From the NCBI GenBank assembly GCA_000320545.1, contig ADNK01003312.1, forward strand, positions 1-64,000: DNA of 64,000 nucleotides, read 5' to 3'. The position numbers were made by a program, and so were the translations under genes. Below the pieces are notes generated by a model, which saw only the letters and a list, made by a program, of their open reading frames with translations, had not been told where the DNA came from and did not search any database. Numbering within the stretch: the stretch's first letter is position 1; the number at the start of each line of letters is the position of its first letter. Origin of the DNA: Bigelowiella natans CCMP2755 (taxonomy: Eukaryota; Protista; Cercozoa). This document shows positions 2,633 through 51,329 of this stretch, piece by piece.

Positions 2633-2950
2633 CTATTGTTGGCTACGCGTGATGGCATTGAGATCTTGCGCATGAGCCAGGATCATTTCTGCACCCTACG
2701 GCATCGAATATAACAGGTAGTATTGTGTGTATATGTGTGTAGACGTTATTGCACAAACCCATACATGGTGTGGTGCTTAGCATGTGAATGTCGTATGTAT
2801 GCCAGCAGTCACTGAAATTCTAAATAGCATTTATGATATAGTATGATGGCACCACCTTTTCAGCAATCATGAAAGTCGCAGCTTGCGTATTGCCTAAGAA
2901 GCAAAATGAAAATAAAACATACACACACACACACACACATACACACACAC

Positions 2951-2997
<47 letters not shown>

Positions 2998-3480
2998 ATA
3001 CGAGTGTGTTGTGTGTGCTTATTTATTTTAAAAATGAATTCATTTTACAGAACGCCTGAACATTACAGGCCTTTAGGCAACTTTATATGATTTATGCAGT
3101 GATAGGACCATTGGGTATGATTGGCATAACGGAGGCATCGATAACACGAAGATTCTCGACCTAAGAACAACCACAAGACTCACAATTTGCCACTCATTTG
3201 AATGCACAAGTACACCCACAAAATACTAGTAACGTTTTTTTGGATACATAAATCAAAAGTAACACACACACACACACATAAACAATATTTCTTATAGAAA
3301 GAGTAAAGGGGAGCGAGGGAAAAGATGTTCTAGTGAATATTGCTACATTATGCACTTTGAGCTCTGGATTGACCACTGACATCGGATCATGCCTACCCCC
3401 CAACAACACCGCCAACAGCACCAAACCATCCACTCAAGCCCCCTCCAATTCACACATACAAATAAAATTTAGACATATTG

Positions 3481-3519
<39 letters not shown>

Positions 3520-4880
3520 TACAATATGGCAGAAAATTCAACCAATTGAGCCTTTATTTGAATGCTGACCTGCTTCCCATTTTGCAGGTGCCTACAGGAT
3601 GATATCCTGTATCGACGTTGGCTCGTACCTTCAAGAAGAGTTTTATGATAAAATGAAACTCTTAAGGATTGGCAGGTCCACCACCATGATCTCATCATCC
3701 CACCCCTTGCCAACACACATGACTACGCACATTTGTGATAGATGTTCTGCGGAACAAAAGCGGCGAGAAATTCTTCCCGATTGGAACGGGCTATTTGTTG
3801 ATTTTGAACACCGTTATTTCGCACTCTTTGTTGCCGGCTGGTACAGTTGTTTTGGGGGCAATCACCCTCATCATTTTCTAGCTATTAATAGCATCAGCTC
3901 AATACAACATTAGCAACATGCGATGGTGTCTACCCAATCCTCCAATTCTTTGTCAGTCGAGACCTGAATCGGTAGCAGAGGGGGAGGGAGGGGCATTGAA
4001 TAACCCGATGGATAACATGAATTCGGGAAGATGCAGAAGGGGAGCGCCGGATGGAGAGAAAGCAAAAGCTATGGCTTAGAGAGAGAATAGAGAATTTGTT
4101 GGACTTTGATTTTGAAAGGAATCGTTACTGAGCAGATGATTGAAACATACGTCTTTTCCAGGCTGAAGCTCCTCCCCTCGAATGCCCTCAAATGCCTTCT
4201 GTGAAACCACCTAAGAGCCACAAGACGAGGCGTTATTTGTCGCTTCGATCTCCTCCTCAACGAGTTGAACTACAGTGCTTTTGACAGTAATAACACACTA
4301 CTTGCGGCACCTTTCTGCATATCTTAATGCCCTCCACAATTGAATCTAAATCGCGTCTGTCGGATAGATACCTGAAGATATCAACGACGACGACGATGAT
4401 GATGATGATGGTTTTCGCTACTACTACTTCTCATTTTCGTTACCATATCTCAAGCATGATTGGCTTGTTATTGAAGCCATTATTGGCTACTATTGAAAAG
4501 AGACTTACTTTGGGTCGATTAAGGGCTTGTCTTTGGCGTTAATGCTTCTCAGACGAATAGTCCCTTAACATATTTCAATTAAGTGCCAATATGCAAGATA
4601 GAAACACCCCCCCCCCCCCCCCCCCCCCTTCCTATTGGAGTTGAAAGTAGGGAAAATTGACGGATGTCATTCCTTCCTTTTCCCTGTTGTATACTACACG
4701 CTATTCACACCTCGGCTCTTAGGAGTGACCGCGTGAGGTTTCAAGTTGAACCCCGTCGAGACTGGAGGCTCTAGCAGCAGCAGGAGCAGCATGTGACCAG
4801 ATATGTAAGAAGACAAGAAGAATCGTACCAGGAAAACAAATGCATGAGGTGGGTATTCACGCACACACACAGTACACAAC

Positions 4881-4919
<39 letters not shown>

Positions 4920-5590
4920 AGATGCATACCAAGGAGCAAATCTGCATTGGAACGAACGTGATCCTGAGCGATTCGTAGTTACAATGATACGTCAGTTAGC
5001 ACTTCTTACGAGCAAAAGAATACTCTCTTCCGTGGATTTCAACAGAACGGTCAAATCGATTCTGTTTGAGAGTACTCTCGGAAGAAATCCAAAACATCTT
5101 TTTCAAATATGCACATGCCAATACTGCTACATAACGACGGGTACAGCAGCCCTGTGAAACACTGATTCTCAGATATGTGCCGCAGAAGGGCAGGACACCG
5201 TTCATATTCTTGAAATAATAGGCTTTGATGTTGAGGAGTTGTTTCAAAACAGCTTTCTTCCTCCTCCTCCTCATCATCATCATCGTCTTCTTCTTCTTCA
5301 CCTTCTGTTTCGTCTTGATAGTTATACAACAATGTACCTGTTGGATTTGAATATCCGGGGGTCCTGTGCTGTTGCGACTGGTAAACAAGACAGTGTTTTC
5401 AGCGAAATGAATGGACACTAGCCTTCAATTTCACGACGAATATCACGTATGGTTTATTCTCTACCCCCCCCCCCCCCCTCCCCCTATGCTCTCTCCCACA
5501 AACAGGAACACTCGTAGGCGAATGGAGAAACCTTGAGGCGTACAGGTTGGCCTCCACGTGTGAAAACAGATGCATGGGATTTAGTCCTGC

Positions 5591-5641
<51 letters not shown>

Positions 5642-6009
5642 GTGACGATGATGATGATGACGATGATGGCTACGTGGTTACTTCATGTATAGAGATTCGT
5701 TCTGTCGCCTGGAAATATGTTTCACAATAAACGGGAGCAGCATGCGAACGACTATCTTCAAAACAAATGTCCGCCGGTCAAGCGACTCGTTTCACCCGGC
5801 GATGAGGACAGAAAACCGTCGATGTTTCCCGTTGGGACGTGTCAGAACGCATTACGCGATAGCACGTATTTTGCTCACTCTTTCAGCTAATGCGCACCTG
5901 CAAGCTTTGACTCCCATTTACATGCAACACGGGGATGGTCGACTAAGTTGCTTCCAACGCCTTTCGAATGGAGAATGGAACTGCTCAGTAATTCATGAGA
6001 ATGCATATG

Positions 6010-6051
<42 letters not shown>

Positions 6052-8122
6052 ACACACTCTTGCACAATACCAAACGCACTCATACGAAAAATGTACGTGC
6101 ATATAATGTATATATTTTAAGCAGACGAAGGACCTCTGAGAGCTACTTTGGGCTCTATGCCAACCTGTAGATTATCGCTGCCTTTAGTATCTTTGTCTTC
6201 TTCTTCTTCATCATCATCATCATCACCACCACCACCACCATTAGTTCTAACAGATATAAAGCAAACAACACGCATAATGTCTATTCAGAAACTAAAAACA
6301 CTGTCGTACCCCCCCCCACACACACATATATTGATTAATTCGCGAATTCTTGAAGATAAAGGGGTAGGGGGGGGAAGCTGAAACACCTCTCTCAAGTGCG
6401 AAGGAGGACCTATACCGCTCAGAAGAAGAATCTACAACAACATACATGATGAGGAAATATCTCCAACATTAGCAGCCAACAAGGCATAGCACTAGCGCAC
6501 CTGTGGAGACCCGATGACGCCAGCAGAGAGAATTATCTTTGTAGAGTAATAGAGAAGGCAATGTATATTTGATATGGAATGTGTCTCATGGTGCTGAGCC
6601 GCCTCTAGCTATCACGGCTGTACCTCGTTACGTGCTAAAACAAGATGCTTCTTGTCGGTTCTGTCCGTATAGGTCACCTGGCATTCGCGACATATGTGAA
6701 TGAGCAATATCAAACCCCACGAAGAGAACGCATTGCGCTTGCCAGAATGTAGAGAGAAGGAAGAATATGAGAGCGGGAGATTGCGTCTTTGCTGAAGTGC
6801 GAGAGAAGCTAATGGCGCGTGTCATCATCCTCTGCCATGCATCTAACCCTCAAACATAATCGCCGCCATCCAACACCACCAACATGTGAGTCATCATTTG
6901 CATGAAAGAGTTCTGAATACCCCAATAGCCTTTTGGACGCCCCCTCCATGATTTCCAGTGAGAAATATTCCTAAATTGAGTGGGTTTGTGCGCGTGTATG
7001 GTAGGCGAGAGAATAGTACCACAGGATGTAAAAATGCGTGCATATACTCAACGGTAGACTCCCTCATTGCTAATGCCCCATGCCCTGAGAGCAATTTTAC
7101 GTATATATCGCCACACCTGTAACAAGGCTGTTTGGCCTCACGTGCAGCTTGGGAGATTCCAACTGCTCAAGTTATCATTCAGTCACTTACAAAAAACCAC
7201 AGAGTGTAAATATATAAATATATTACGATTTTCGATAAGAATGCTCTTGAGGCCGTGACCTGAAGACAAAATAGACTTTCACGTTGAGCTATTAAAGGAG
7301 AATTGCCTCTCGCAATACGACATGTTTCGAGTCCTTGATGGTTTTGTATGCTATGTGAGGTGTATGCTCTAGTACCCTGTGGCCAGTATCGTCGCGGATA
7401 TACACCTGCATTTTTGCGTTTTGCAGCATTGTTAGCATTTTCTCTCTCAAACTACAATCTCTACTGAACAACTAACAAATGAAGGGGGAGTGGGGGAGGA
7501 GGGGGGGGGGGGGGCTGTCCTTTCTTTTTTCCTTTATTTCTTTATGATTTCCTATCTATCTCCGGCGGAGGTTCTCCGTGCCCATGTGCGGTTTTGTTTT
7601 CGCTGCTGGTAGATCGGCATACCTGGTATATCTGAACGCCGTCCTGAGGAGTGATAAGGGAGTTCTGGTCTTCGTTATCTTCAAACCCTGCTTGCACACA
7701 GGCCTGGCAAGGAAACAACCCGTTATACATGGGCGCCTCCTCTCAGCGTCTGCATAGAGTTGGCAGCAAAAGCAGAGGGATATCCCTCCGGTCTGTTCTG
7801 ACCTTGTGAAACGCCGTCGCTATGGGAGAGAGCTGCGCCTTTGGGATATCTGATACGCGAACGTCACCTAGGAACATGTACAGGAGGAGGATCTTACATC
7901 TTGCTTCAATCGATCGAGGAAATATTGACCGAATAAATCGGAGTGAGAGAGAAAGAGACAGGGAGGGAGAGAGGGGGGGAGGAGGGGAGGCGCGTCGTCT
8001 TCATGATGAAGCTAACAGGTGCTATGGAAGAGCTCTCTCACCGCCTTTCCCATGGGCTGTAGAGGACCCTGATGTTGTGAAGCAAAATCCATTCAAACAC
8101 ATGCACGAATGCACGTGCTACT

Positions 8123-8153
<31 letters not shown>

Positions 8154-8736
8154 ACACGTGATATGCTACAGGATATGCTCTAAATGATCAGCAATCGAAC
8201 CTCTTGAGTTGTCCTCGTAGCGCTTGAAATACGGCAGCGCCTCATCAGCACTCCATCTGATAGAGCATACCCACCACCCATTCATCAACCCACCAGCAGA
8301 GTACAAGGAGGATCATCAGAAATCAACGGCGGCACTGCATGTTCTCCATCGCATGACGATGTTCTCTCGTCATCTACATATCAAGGTCACTGCGGTGATA
8401 AACAGCTAAAATGAAGGGCCTTCGATCGTCTCTTGGCTTTGCATACCCGAAAGCGCCATTTGCAGCCCATTGGTCATAGATCTCTCTCGCGCCCCTGTAA
8501 GGACACAAGACGCGTTGCTCACCAAGGGAAATGTACGTGAAGGAGACGAAAGTCAATATCAGCGTATTGTATATATGTGTTGTGCACGCCGTTTTTCTTT
8601 TTTATGATCATCTATATCAACAAAGGAGAGAAGAGGCAAGCTGTTAGAAAGATGCTGATTCTTCACCGGTTGAACAACATGCCATTCACGAGAGAGGTGC
8701 CTCCAACACCGCGTCCTATATGTTAGCACACACACG

Positions 8737-8791
<55 letters not shown>

Positions 8792-9140
8792 GAACATAAA
8801 CACTATCAGAAGTAGATATCGAAGCAATAGAGGTGTGATTGATTGTTTCCCGTTGTCTTCATCATCGTTCTATCGTCCACGCACCTCGTGTGCAGCGAAT
8901 GTGCCTTATTATGCGTTATTTACGAGTGAAAAGGGGCGGAGAGGGAGAGATCAGAGGGCGTTAAGAGAGAGATATTTGTGAGCAGAAAGACGGTCGTGTG
9001 GTAGGCAGTAGCAGTAGAAGTAGTAGTGCTAGTGGAAGTAATAGTCGTTGTCATAGTACTACTACTACTACTACTAGTAGTGAGATAAACGTAATGTACC
9101 TGTCCCCACAATGAGGCTGCTCAACTGTCGCATATCTGCA

Positions 9141-9176
<36 letters not shown>

Positions 9177-9228
9177 AATGCTGATATATCACCAATTGAA
9201 GATGAGTGATGGGGAAGGGAGGGGGGTG

Positions 9229-9285
<57 letters not shown>

Positions 9286-9778
9286 GGAAGAGGGGGGAGA
9301 GGCAGAGAGGTTGAGTAGTAGTAAATCCAACCCCCAATTGAGCGTTGTGGCGAAAGCAGCGCCATATTTCATCGGATCATGGACGGAATCGTTCAAATCC
9401 TCCTAAAATATACAAAATCAGCAGCAGCAGCACATATACCATAAGAAGGTACATGGATAGCAAGGACAAAAACAGAACATAACAACGGTAGGTGGTCACC
9501 GCAGAGAACTCACAGAAGAAACATGCACTAGATCTTCCTCCTCATGTCATTGTATTGACTGATGAGCAACCACACCTTGAGCGAGTCTCCAGCCTCCAGG
9601 ACCACCACATTATAACCTTTTACAAAGGGGTGATTGCAGATTAGCAGTGCCCTATAGCACTAGATTCCATGCAGATGACCAAGATGTTGTATTCACTGCT
9701 ACATACTACCGTTCTCAGAGAGCCGATTTGCTACTAAACATCCAGCGCTAAGATGAATCAAAAGTTGATGCTATGTAA

Positions 9779-9816
<38 letters not shown>

Positions 9817-11618
9817 TATAATTTGTTATTATTAACGTATTCCAATGACAAAGTTGTCAAGAGGCTTTACTATTTGCTCTGTGATTGATTCATACACAAA
9901 GTCCCAGCATGCATCGTCACCGCACAACCTTCCTGCGCCGATAACGACGTAATCGGCAATTGTTGTTTGAAACGAATCTGATTGATGGTGATCGTAAGTA
10001 ATGACAACGAGACAAGCTCATACATAACAAGATGAAATATAGACAAATGCATATTAATATTAAAAACCATAGAGCTCACAGGCTCAGAAAACGCAACGCC
10101 GAATCAATCTGAGTACCAGCTTCGATGTCTTGTGTTGTCGCAGCTACGAGATCTGTGGCGTTTCTGGGGAGATTTTGCTTATCCGAAATCTCTCCTATTA
10201 TTATTAGCACCAATAGAGACAGAGAGAATGTCATCCTGACCTGTCTTGTTAAACGAATCATTCACAAAACTTAGGAAATAGCAAGCATCCGCACATCGGT
10301 GTAGGGAGTTATGCATTTCTTTGAAGAAACGTTGTGGTGCTATTTGAAGACTACCGATGAGGTAAGGAGCTCCAAACTTCTCCAATATTTCCTGCGTGCA
10401 GTATCATGGTAATGTATTTAAAGTGTGTGTATGTGTTTTCAGAGAAAGAGAGAAGGGGGGGGGGGGAGAAGGGGGTCCAGAATATGATGCATATCAATTT
10501 TAAATGGTGTTAATTCTTCCGAACCGAGTGATGAAGATGATGAAAGATATTCGTTGCATCCTTTTGATAACAATAAACTTCAGGTGATAATAGGCATCAG
10601 AGTAGCAAAATTGCATAGGCATACTGTCGCGTATCTTATTTCTCTGCTTCCTTGAGAGAAGCAAGCACCCAGAGGGATGAATAGAGCCACAGTACGTACC
10701 CGTGCTGCATACTGTGTTAGTTGCATGGTGTTATTACAACCTTTCCTGCGTTGTCCAAGATCGGCTGCTTGTTACCTGTTTAGATACCCATCAATATGGC
10801 TGCTCAGCATTGTGTTAAAGTCCATTCCGACTTTATAATTACGAACGTACATGTAACTTTGTGCGTGCGTGCGTGCGTGCGCGCGCGTGTGTTCAAATAC
10901 GCTTCCAAATGAGCATGATTAATGGTGGATGTGTTTCATTGCGGCAGACCCGGATGCAGGGCAAGCCATTCAGTCACATCGTAGACATTTCCTAAGTAGA
11001 GCATAGAAGTCCCGGGTTCAAATCAAGCAAGCTGTAGCCACGCCATATATGCGTATATTAGGAGAAATGCCATAGCATCACCAATGACCATAATTTCGAA
11101 ACAATATCGTCTGCAATGTGTGACATTACAGTATACCGTCAATTATTATCCAGCAATCTGTTTCCTTGCTATGCCTCCGAACCTCAGCCACCGTGAACCT
11201 TAAATGCAAAGGAGGGGGTGGATTATGCTTTAAAGATACATACGGTACTCTCCACGTACTTCTCACGATCGATTTCATTGAAGGTTATTCGAACGCATAG
11301 ACAGGTCAGTACCTCTTTGTCTCTGTTTCTGCGTGCGAATACTGATTGCGGTGGTACAAGCTTCCGACTAAGGCCAAAGCGGATCCTGTCGCTAAAGCCT
11401 GATGGGAGATCACACTCGATTCATTTTGTGTGATAAAGAGAGCGAGAACGGAAGAGGAAGAAAGAGGGGGAGTAGTGGGATTCGTGTAGCTGGGGGAAGG
11501 ACAGGGAAATGACACCTTCAGTCCCCTCCTGCGTGACCAGTACGTACTAGATCAAATAAACAAGGGAGTTAATCGAAAGCGTCATCGAGCTTTCTATTAA
11601 CCCACCGCTTCCCTTCAT
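2633..11618 (-). CDS. Cytochrome b5-GMC oxidoreductase fusion (choline dehydrogenase-like flavocytochrome), >30 small exons; start codon tentative
   Basis: Spliced translation of the b5 domain (~11198-10300): [21 protein letters not shown]|[13 protein letters not shown]|[12 protein letters not shown]|[12 protein letters not shown]|[18 protein letters not shown] motifs follow: [10 protein letters not shown]|[65 protein letters not shown]|[24 protein letters not shown]|TIRLRS..PLIDPK|[30 protein letters not shown]|[12 protein letters not shown]|GAEMIL. Stop at 2633-2635. Confidence 0.92.
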
Positions 11619-12362
11619 TCGCAGAGAACAGGGGAAAATCTACCAAACATGAATTTCAACTCGACGAACGAAAAGAGCGCCTCCTTGGAAACATGGGGGG
11701 AGGGGCGCGAGGTAGATACCCAAGTCGACGTAACCCTGACATCCATCCACGTGCTGTCACCTTCAGTCCCCTTCCAAAGACAGATTCTCGCAATAATATA
11801 TATATTCCTGATGATTAAAACGGCATGCGTTTTTGCATCGTCGCATCCAACCGGATTGACGTAATACAGAAATCAGCGACTTTTCTCGTCGGTGGGTATT
11901 GCATTTTATTCTGAAATTTTCTTCGTGGTCAAAGCAATCAACATAGGAGAAAATGCACTGGCAAGCTGGCAAGCGAAGATGACAGAAATCGCTCATTTTC
12001 TCGAACAAGCCATATGATGTTTTCTCGAATAAAAAACGTTCCAAAATGAGTAATTCGGGGAGAGAGATTTGTTCTGGATTTTTCGAAATCAACAAGCATT
12101 TTTCCTTGTCTCAGTGTAATTTTCAACAACGCGTTTCAGAAATTCGCCAGCAGCGGCTGCAAGAAAACGTCTGAATATACGCCTTTTTCCAGCTACGACA
12201 TGTGGAATATTTTGTCGCAATATCTCACCCATATTTGCTTCCGGGAATGGCGTTCTGCAATGGGCAGCATCGGTTGCGCGTTTACTTTTCTCCTTGAACT
12301 CTGGACCCCCACCCTTCCCCCCCCCCTCTCCCTTCCGCCCGTAATGCCGTAATGTGATTCAT

Positions 12363-50109: not shown

Positions 50110-51135
50110 TTAATAGTGGGATGAAGCGACAGCAGCAGTGCTTGTCGGGGGCGGAGGCGTGGAGGACAGAATAGCCCGGTCGCCTATGTCCTGCACAGGC
50201 CTAGCATTGAACCCGTTTTTATCCGACGCTGGCAGAAGCTTGGTCACGCTTGCGAACACGTCAAGCTGTTCCTTCGACATCTCGATTGGATCCGTGTAGA
50301 GGTAGTATTTCACGTTTTCCGAGCAAGGCGGAGTGGTGAGCGACCCGGTGTAGAAGAGATATCTGGAGTCCGCAGAGTCGTGGTCGGCGGGAAGAAGGTT
50401 CAGCAGATCAAACCGTCCCTGTATCGTGTGCTCCACTCCCGTGACGGTTGGAAGGAATTGCGAGAACTTGTACTTGGTCGACGGAAAGGCGTCGTTTGCC
50501 TCGCCTTCCTTCACGAACACGGACAGAACGCCGTATTTATTATCTGCGGGCGGGACGGCCTTTTGGTTCTTATGGAAGAATTGAATCTCCATAGCGTAAC
50601 GGGCTCCATTAAACGTGTGCTCGGAAGGATAGTGAAAACGTACATCCATTAGGGAGTAGTTGCCTCCTGGGGTTAGTAGCCAATTCCCAGTTTTCTTAAA
50701 ATCAAAAAAGATTCTTTTGCCATTGTTGGTGATTTTCAGAGGCGATGGCTTGTAACCAGCCTTCAACGGCACAAGATTGTTTGCAATTCCCCACGCGGAG
50801 TCGTCCTGCAGGTCGATAGGAGACTGCATGCCACTTCCTCTACAAGCTAGATTCTCCCACCTGCTCTCTTCATACGAGAAATCGTCATCAGGGTTAAAAG
50901 ACATGCCGTAGAAAGAGATGTTTCCCTCTTTCCACACCTTAGCAGCTGCAAAGTGTCTACCCATGCAGGTGGCATCGGCATTTGGAGACTCTGGTGTCAC
51001 GAAGAACGCAATCGTGAAAGTCAGCAGCACTCCGGCGAGGAGAGATCCCACGCAGGCTCCTATGATAACTGTCGTCCCAAACTTTTTCTCCCCTCCAAAA
51101 ATGGGTGTGCTTTCGTCACTGGATGAGTTAGCCAT
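50110..51135 (-). CDS. Intronless alpha-carbonic anhydrase-related protein with N-terminal TM anchor (zinc ligands H94 and H119 substituted)
   Basis: C.GSGMQSPIDL, NNGK, RFHYPSEH.FNG..Y.MEIQFFH, YLFYTGSLTTPPCSENV, NARPVQ. TM segment VIIGACVGSLLAGVLLTFTIAFFV. First ATG at 51135. Confidence 0.93.
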   Translation of the reverse strand: MANSSSDESTPIFGGEKKFGTTVIIGACVGSLLAGVLLTFTIAFFVTPESPNADATCMGRHFAAAKVWKEGNISFYGMSFNPDDDFSYEESRWENLACRGSGMQSPIDLQDDSAWGIANNLVPLKAGYKPSPLKITNNGKRIFFDFKKTGNWLLTPGGNYSLMDVRFHYPSEHTFNGARYAMEIQFFHKNQKAVPPADNKYGVLSVFVKEGEANDAFPSTKYKFSQFLPTVTGVEHTIQGRFDLLNLLPADHDSADSRYLFYTGSLTTPPCSENVKYYLYTDPIEMSKEQLDVFASVTKLLPASDKNGFNARPVQDIGDRAILSSTPPPPTSTAAVASSHY

Positions 51136-51329
51136 TTTTATTCGAAGATGTCCTTGCTTCCTGAAAACAGCATACAACGGTCACAATATGCTCTCTTTTT
51201 ACTGGGCATTCCGTTGCGCCACCCCTATCCCCCTCCTCGTCACCCAACTACATCTTAGGGGTCGAATGGGCTAGAAAGAATTTGTGGAATGTATACAGTA
51301 GTTATTTATGACAATGACTTCGTGCCTAG

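Follow-up and report, generated by a model that had tools for sequence, protein, structure and literature searches.

The subject of this analysis is a gene on the minus strand of a 64,000-nucleotide (nt) window of the Bigelowiella natans CCMP2755 genome (GCA_000320545.1, contig ADNK01003312.1, positions 1 to 64,000), in which a cytochrome b5 domain is followed by an enzyme of the GMC oxidoreductase family that depends on flavin adenine dinucleotide (FAD). This nuclear gene, referred to here as the b5-GMC gene, runs in our model from an ATG at 11742 to a stop codon at 2635-2633 and comprises 44 exons encoding 707 amino acids (aa), as derived from RNA contigs, homology and splice modelling. The joining of the b5 and GMC parts in a single transcript is well supported. 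We consider it somewhat more probable than not, by analogy with known enzymes, that the product works as a single 707-residue flavocytochrome consisting of a targeting signal, a b5 domain, a flexible linker and a GMC dehydrogenase, in which electrons would pass from FAD to haem and on to an acceptor, likely cytochrome c in the mitochondrial intermembrane space. All positions given below are those of the window, and the exons and protein domains are listed in Table 1.

Logan contigs of the runs X15, X16 and X17 and raw RNA-seq reads of the run X21 were placed on positions 6201-12200. The RNA nature of X15-X17 is presumed and their contigs are assemblies. DNA runs hold about 0.9 of the sampled words of the region and several presumed RNA runs hold 0.13-0.20, as expected for a spliced mRNA of about 2 kb on 9.5 kb. 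X15, X16 and X17, which come from two studies, each yielded a single spliced contig, of 1403, 1429 and 1856 nt, at a k-mer depth of 48-58. All three connect the b5 exons through the linker exon to the GMC exons, in a stretch running from 11775 to beyond 6385. All of the 14 simple joints shown read CT..AC on the plus strand, that is GT-AG on the minus strand, and a fifteenth joint (8906->9332) jumps a 36-nt exon lying in a repeat-masked stretch. Ten further joints were derived from the record coordinates and bin depths, together with GT-AG ends and the reading frame. The 28 exons between 11775 and 6387 sum to 1338 nt, which matches the record coordinates, and form one open frame of 446 codons. 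Since 27 GT-AG introns have been removed from them, the contigs derive from spliced RNA. An earlier note on this DNA, made from the letters of the sequence, had proposed a phase-consistent minus-strand exon chain leading from b5 to GMC at this place, and the RNA contigs carry that chain in one open frame; the junctions between ~10400 and ~9930, on which the proposed fusion hinges, are bridged by spliced contigs that join b5, linker and GMC exons. Beyond 6385 the contigs extend by a further 93, 93 and 516 nt according to record arithmetic (the table of contigs shows 255 for X17), and the first loose letters past this point coincide with the beginning of the next exon, at 6164. X21 contributed six reads, all in exon-holding bins and too few to show transcript ends. 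A second contig of X15 (6964-7133), 170 nt in length, is unspliced across intron 24 at a depth of 3.8 as compared to 47.9 for the spliced contig, and represents pre-mRNA, intron retention or a trace of DNA.

At the 5' end, a genomic in-frame stop is present at about 11815-11817, and 11742 is the first in-frame ATG after it. The earlier note had placed the start of the gene at 11618, with a first exon at about 11562-11618. This exon is absent from the RNA contigs, which use 11720-11775 (containing the ATG) and 11516-11546 instead. Record arithmetic of the RNA contigs ruled out both this first exon and an alternative 32-nt exon at 11562-11593; exon 2 was placed with 32 raw letters, one of them ambiguous, a count which its rival 11562-11593 fails to satisfy. 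No in-frame methionine exists between M1 and M197 of the model, and M197 lies behind the FAD-binding motif. Therefore, these exons cannot yield the GMC part without the b5 domain.

Exons 1-28 (11775 to 6387) are fixed by RNA, and for the remainder, from 6164 to 2633, the model comes from spliced alignment with a paralogue (described below) under splice and frame constraints. The paralogue-guided alignment was carried out with our own spliced protein-to-genome aligner, which recovered most of the known exons in the conserved RNA-verified regions and made errors in the less conserved ones. Splice-site weight matrices derived from the 27 verified introns, together with frame-consistent exon chaining, served to finish the 3' model. 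Ab initio chaining without homology skipped a clearly homologous exon and was dropped in favour of homology-anchored chains. Homology is clear for exons 35-44, which are cleanly bordered by AG|...|GT, and the left end of 2633 given in the earlier note is the last base of the stop codon in our model. The list of open reading frames over the region contains short frames only, and the b5 and GMC motifs, when the minus strand is read in three frames, are spread across short stop-free pieces. The observation that the exons are too small to appear in such a list thus holds well, the exons being 20-86 nt in size with a median of 48.5 nt, separated by 43 introns of 64-363 nt (median 172 nt).

Against a local profile made from six b5 domains of the same genome, the b5 domain of the joined model reaches 58.3 bits, and 200 shuffled sequences had at most 3.6 bits. 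With the Pfam profile Cyt-b5 (PF00173), the exon pieces matching profile positions 1-20 and 16-35 give 17.3 and 22.9 bits, falling just under the cut-off of 23.7 bits because these exons encode only 14-20 aa. Both axial histidines of PF00173 are present, His80 in LHPGN and His104 in HLHHS, in the two axial-His regions that the earlier note had read from the sequence. The b5 domain is complete and is predicted to bind haem b, and the view that its cytochrome is unlike that of cellobiose dehydrogenase is borne out by the b5-type profile match. The linker that follows, put earlier at ~60 aa, is about half of that in length.

The GMC part begins with a GxGxxG FAD motif followed by VVVLEAG, encoded by the RNA-verified exons 10-12. 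GMC signature 2 shows one deviation, a V in place of [PSTA]. In blastp, residues 132-694 are collinear with residues 31-587 of the choline dehydrogenase jgi/Bigna1/45749 of the same organism with 33% identity (E 1e-92). The catalytic His632 is present and the second catalytic residue, Asn676 in PNGNT, was assigned by alignment to TNGNL of the paralogue, which agrees with the full GMC enzyme with a His/Asn pair and PNGNT described earlier. Exon-by-exon Pfam searches gave E <0.01 for only four exons, the others being too short; two of the four match GMC_oxred_C (PF05199; E 1.2e-4 and 6.9e-5). PF00732 was not detected exon by exon, the exons being too short, and a search of the genome with this profile did not pick up the gene. 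Taken together, the GMC part is complete and is predicted to be an FAD-dependent dehydrogenase of the His/Asn type.

The flavocytochrome reading outlined above would work as follows. The substrate would be of the alcohol type, be it a choline-like amino alcohol, a sugar or some other alcohol, and would be oxidised by hydride transfer to FAD, and the reduced flavin would pass its two electrons singly to the tethered b5 haem. The haem domain would then swing out on the linker and reduce a one-electron acceptor, which may be cytochrome c in the mitochondrial intermembrane space. We infer cofactor binding, electron direction, substrate, compartment and acceptor from sequence features and from comparison with better known enzymes, and the path from FAD through haem b5 to an external acceptor, suggested earlier, seems a reasonable analogy. 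The compartment and the acceptor are favoured on the basis of the N-terminus. In flavocytochrome b2 the bipartite presequence consists of a basic part, an uncharged hydrophobic stretch and a short spacer, after which the b5 domain begins, and the same order of parts is found in the b5-GMC protein. Flavocytochrome b2 and sulfite oxidase both carry an N-terminal b5 domain, reside in the intermembrane space and reduce cytochrome c.

Comparison with known systems places the protein among the tethered-cytochrome flavodehydrogenases, a pairing of b5 with GMC itself being one for which we found no studied example. Flavocytochrome b2 (yeast CYB2, L-lactate:cytochrome c oxidoreductase) resembles it in having an N-terminal b5 domain tethered to a flavin dehydrogenase, in its basic and then uncharged hydrophobic N-terminal signal, and in the expected path from flavin through the b5 haem to cytochrome c. 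However, its catalytic domain is a TIM-barrel binding flavin mononucleotide (FMN; the FMN_dh family) and not an FAD-binding GMC fold, so that the B. natans protein is only a functional analogue outside this family and its substrate would not, by homology, be a 2-hydroxy acid. Animal sulfite oxidase shares the N-terminal b5 on a flexible tether and the delivery of electrons to cytochrome c in the intermembrane space, but its catalytic domain carries a molybdenum cofactor and is not a flavoprotein. Cellobiose dehydrogenase, like the b5-GMC protein, joins a b-type haem domain at the N-terminus through a flexible linker to a His/Asn GMC dehydrogenase (PMC6472588, PMC6509819), and it demonstrates that a GMC flavodehydrogenase is able to pass electrons to a tethered mobile cytochrome (PMC6472588). 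Its cytochrome, in contrast, is a disulfide-containing beta-sandwich ligated by Met/His, whereas the b5 fold is alpha/beta with His/His ligation; the b5-GMC protein is thus not a cellobiose dehydrogenase but only its functional analogue, and the fusion must have arisen independently. Choline dehydrogenase/BetA (jgi/Bigna1/45749; PDB 9lq0) has the same His/Asn pair and signatures and aligns over the whole GMC part, but lacks a haem domain. The B. natans paralogue and bacterial BetA are close to each other and the b5-GMC protein is far from both; at 33% identity it is not an orthologue of choline dehydrogenase. In an engineered fusion of FAD glucose dehydrogenase with cytochrome b562, a GMC enzyme was likewise given a b-type haem domain as electron exit (PMC8348568). 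That fusion is man-made and uses a four-helix-bundle cytochrome, and the B. natans protein would be its natural, b5-fold counterpart.

The main rival to the mitochondrial route is a secretory one, which we regard as unlikely. It keeps the same fusion and takes the N-terminus as a signal peptide or anchor for the endoplasmic reticulum (ER), placing the protein in the secretory pathway or outside the cell, where, as in cellobiose dehydrogenase, the enzyme would use its haem on a lumenal or extracellular acceptor such as Fe(III) or another redox enzyme. The 15-residue hydrophobic stretch suits the core of a signal peptide, an N-x-T sequon (NAT) is present in the linker, and cellobiose dehydrogenase, the only well-studied GMC flavocytochrome, is secreted (PMC6472588). 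However, the core is preceded by a basic segment of 18 residues devoid of acidic residues, and such a segment would be long in a signal peptide and is typically found in mitochondrial presequences.

Two other proposals accept the fusion and assign it a different use, and we hold both to be improbable. In one, the GMC part would reduce its own b5, which in turn would feed membrane desaturases, hydroxylases and P450s, making the protein a substrate-driven replacement of NADH-cytochrome b5 reductase. The electron path within the protein would be identical to that of the flavocytochrome reading, and the many Cyt-b5 matches of the genome, at least 33, are in keeping with it; but the protein has an N-terminal targeting signal and no C-terminal anchor of the microsomal b5 kind (its C-terminus reads ...AITRSQQ), and such a replacement is without known precedent. 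In the other, the protein is an ordinary GMC oxidase giving its electrons to O2, with the b5 as a regulatory, sensor or non-redox ligand-binding domain. Oxidases are numerous among the GMC enzymes of the PDB list, and some b5-like domains, of the MAPR type, are not electron carriers. The two axial histidines, absent from MAPR-type domains, are however both present here, and the domain scores as a classical b5. Finally, it is very improbable that a small b5 protein and a GMC enzyme are encoded by two adjacent genes which were joined by an assembly or read-through artefact, because, even though a contig across two genes is no proof of one transcript and retention of intron 8 would close the frame 57 codons past the b5 domain, the frame stays open from b5 through the linker into GMC across eight GT-AG joints, no start codon precedes M197 in the GMC part, and the structure recurs in all three runs of the two studies at a depth of 48-58.

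Several points weigh against the flavocytochrome reading and the model behind it. A de Bruijn contig could merge overlapping transcripts. Exons 30-44 lie outside the part laid out by RNA and are modelled from homology and splice signals, and among them exons 31, 32 and 34 are provisional. The canonical HPGG of the b5 domain reads HPGN, its second glycine being replaced by asparagine. Identity to a true choline dehydrogenase is low, and the substrate is not identifiable from the sequence. An ER signal peptide or signal anchor would account for the N-terminus equally well, and the function proposed for the protein stands on sequence and analogy. With these points in mind, we suggest only tentatively that the protein may be the first natural b5-GMC flavocytochrome, an alcohol-type substrate:cytochrome c oxidoreductase of the intermembrane space or a secreted one, independent of cellobiose dehydrogenase.

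The whole 91.4-Mb assembly, in which the gene is located on contig C425, was searched for relatives. GMC matches were found on contigs C181, C605, C2228, C1946 and C1924 in addition to the b5-GMC locus, and no b5 exons were found upstream of the other GMC loci of the genome, including the multi-exon loci on C1946 and C1924. The genome holds at least 33 Cyt-b5 matches. The closest GMC relative is the choline dehydrogenase on C181 (5500-12500), which is 100% identical to EukProt jgi/Bigna1/45749 and served as the paralogue in our modelling. It is 607 aa in length, encoded by three exons, and shares 58% identity with BetA of marine gammaproteobacteria, a closeness that is unusual for a nuclear gene of a eukaryote. 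At C2228:12121-15276, a GMC C-terminus is found in one open frame with a hydrophobic segment and an ABC-transporter ATPase.

Full-text searches of the literature, together with reviews of cytochrome-wired enzymes, a survey of fungal GMC enzymes and a paper on the algal fatty acid photodecarboxylase, revealed no natural b5-GMC enzyme. Among the GMC entries of the PDB, listed with the paralogue as query and judged by molecule names and lengths only, no chain of this kind was seen. A query made of the separate exon rows on the paralogue scaffold, which was swamped by choline dehydrogenases, gave no PF00173 among the best 120 of 8000 candidates, all of them BetA-like. The longest exon used as a query (7605-7721, minus strand) matched three spurious repeat proteins in a representative protein library, which holds one representative per 50% cluster, so that a blank says little. 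The architecture, still uncharacterised, may well exist in other algae and protists, and its spread is possibly wide. The earlier proposal of a new class of flavocytochrome stands as far as the one-protein structure of b5 and GMC is concerned, and its newness as a class is not established.

Few flavocytochromes have a haem exit of their own; flavocytochrome b2 and cellobiose dehydrogenase are among them, along with a handful more, and they serve as textbook systems of inter-domain electron transfer. To our knowledge, cellobiose dehydrogenase is the only GMC enzyme with such a haem wire. If the flavocytochrome reading is true, the b5-GMC protein would be a second and independent solution to the wiring of a GMC enzyme to a cytochrome, and would join flavocytochrome b2 and sulfite oxidase as a third kind of dehydrogenase with a tethered b5. 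If located in the intermembrane space, it would provide a new electron entry point to the algal respiratory chain. The haem wire of cellobiose dehydrogenase has proved so valuable in biosensors and biofuel cells that cytochromes have been grafted onto glucose dehydrogenases (PMC8348568), and the protein would, if the reading is true, be a candidate for passing electrons directly to electrodes. The gene also illustrates how fusions may hide in a genome, as with 44 exons of such a small median size both ORF-based and exon-wise domain searches miss significance.

Table 1. Exons of the b5-GMC gene and domains of its predicted protein (exons in window positions, domains in residues)
Feature	Position	Strand	Evidence or remark
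Exon 1	11720-11775	-	5' end of contigs X16/X17; ATG 11742-11740; protein starts MSGLRRLG
Exon 2, 31 nt, basic part of N-terminal signal	11516-11546	-	Record coordinates and bin depth
Exon 3, uncharged hydrophobic stretch and spacer	11313-11398	-	Contig piece 11311-11397 shifted to GT-AG
Exon 4, start of b5 domain	11137-11198	-	Contig piece; Pfam Cyt-b5 positions 1-20, E 0.0049
Exon 5, b5, His80 at 10956-10954	10950-10991	-	Depth and count; Pfam Cyt-b5 positions 16-35, E 8.7e-5
Exon 6, b5	10741-10775	-	Sole candidate with open frame and four-exon sum of 150 nt
Exon 7, b5, His104 at 10530-10528	10525-10560	-	RNA contig counts and frame
Exon 8, end of b5	10355-10391	-	RNA contig counts and frame
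Exon 9, linker, phase 1 at both ends	10117-10194	-	Contig piece 10117-10193 in all three runs
Exon 10, end of linker and start of FAD fold (DYVVIGAG)	9929-9977	-	RNA contigs and frame
Exon 11, rest of GxGxxG	9710-9747	-	Joint 9614->9708
Exon 12	9576-9616	-	RNA joints
Exon 13	9332-9402	-	RNA joints and contig piece
Exon 14, 36 nt, repeat-masked stretch	9100-9135	-	34 letters at joint 8906->9332 found at 9102-9135
Exon 15, 20 nt, shortest	8885-8904	-	Counts (153 nt between fixed points) and GT-AG
Exon 16, GMC signature 1	8667-8715	-	RNA contigs and splice/frame
Exon 17	8447-8494	-	RNA joints
Exon 18	8201-8256	-	RNA joints
Exon 19	8042-8068	-	RNA joints
Exon 20	7803-7867	-	RNA joints
Exon 21, 27 codons	7623-7703	-	RNA joints
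Exon 22	7376-7405	-	RNA joints
Exon 23	7227-7259	-	RNA joints
Exon 24	7117-7162	-	RNA joints
Exon 25	6921-6970	-	RNA joints
Exon 26	6624-6677	-	RNA joints
Exon 27, first half of GMC signature 2	6501-6536	-	RNA joints
Exon 28, last RNA-laid exon	6387-6431	-	Joint 6431->6501; loose end 6385
Exon 29	6134-6164	-	First 30 letters are the loose ends of all three contigs; spliced alignment
Exon 30	5912-5960	-	Spliced alignment to paralogue
Exon 31, provisional, 27 nt, RQNESLYMK	5682-5708	-	Frame/splice search; SLY matches ...PITLY of paralogue; not in RNA
Exon 32, provisional	5512-5586	-	Frame/splice search; not in RNA
Exon 33	5338-5422	-	tblastn to paralogue NHFESCAFVRSNEKQKYPDIQ; strong donor
Exon 34, provisional	5125-5161	-	Only phase-compatible candidate resembling paralogue CPVAISYDGNSPI
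Exon 35	4711-4761	-	Spliced alignment
Exon 36	4509-4563	-	Spliced alignment
Exon 37	4311-4371	-	tblastn/spliced alignment to paralogue
Exon 38	4151-4210	-	tblastn/spliced alignment to paralogue
Exon 39	3934-3963	-	tblastn/spliced alignment to paralogue
Exon 40, putative catalytic His632 at 3601-3599	3570-3628	-	Pfam GMC_oxred_C positions 78-98, E 1.2e-4; spliced alignment
Exon 41	3347-3392	-	tblastn/spliced alignment to paralogue
Exon 42	3109-3160	-	Pfam GMC_oxred_C positions 112-133, E 6.9e-5
Exon 43, putative second catalytic residue Asn676 at 2891-2889	2856-2893	-	Homology, spliced alignment
Exon 44, stop codon 2635-2633	2633-2695	-	Spliced alignment and frame
N-terminal signal	aa 1 to about 46		7 basic and 0 acidic residues in first 41; 15-residue uncharged hydrophobic stretch, then spacer
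Cytochrome b5 domain	aa 48 to about 119		Axial His80 and His104
Linker	aa 120-151		About 30 residues, mostly from single exon 9
GMC part	aa 152 to about 700		FAD motif, both family signatures, His632, Asn676

With 43 introns per 2.1-kb coding sequence the intron density of the gene is extreme; the average of the B. natans genome is about 8 introns per gene (PMC13746701). Many of the introns contain (CA)n, (GA)n or (TA)n microsatellites. The exon edges of the 27 verified introns (6387-11775) are biased, with G as the last exon base at 26 of 27 donors and G after 20 of 27 acceptors, giving the pattern AG|G...G|GT. Intron 2 (11399-11515) is 117 nt in length, in frame and free of stop codons, so that its retention would lengthen the protein by 39 residues, placed after the basic N-terminus and ahead of the hydrophobic stretch, and leave the frame intact. 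The 13-nt string GGGGACTGAAGGT occurs inside exon 1 (about 11757-11769) and again across the donor of exon 2 (11514-11526; GGGGACTGAAG|GT), and its copy in exon 1 could serve as an alternative donor.

Two other features of the window may be mentioned. At the start of the contig (40-561, plus strand) lies a stop-free piece of 173 codons that ends in a stop and looks like the last exon of a protein, with no Pfam match. At 50110-51177 on the minus strand, a reading frame of 355 aa with an N-terminal hydrophobic segment appears by eye to be a candidate alpha-type carbonic anhydrase.

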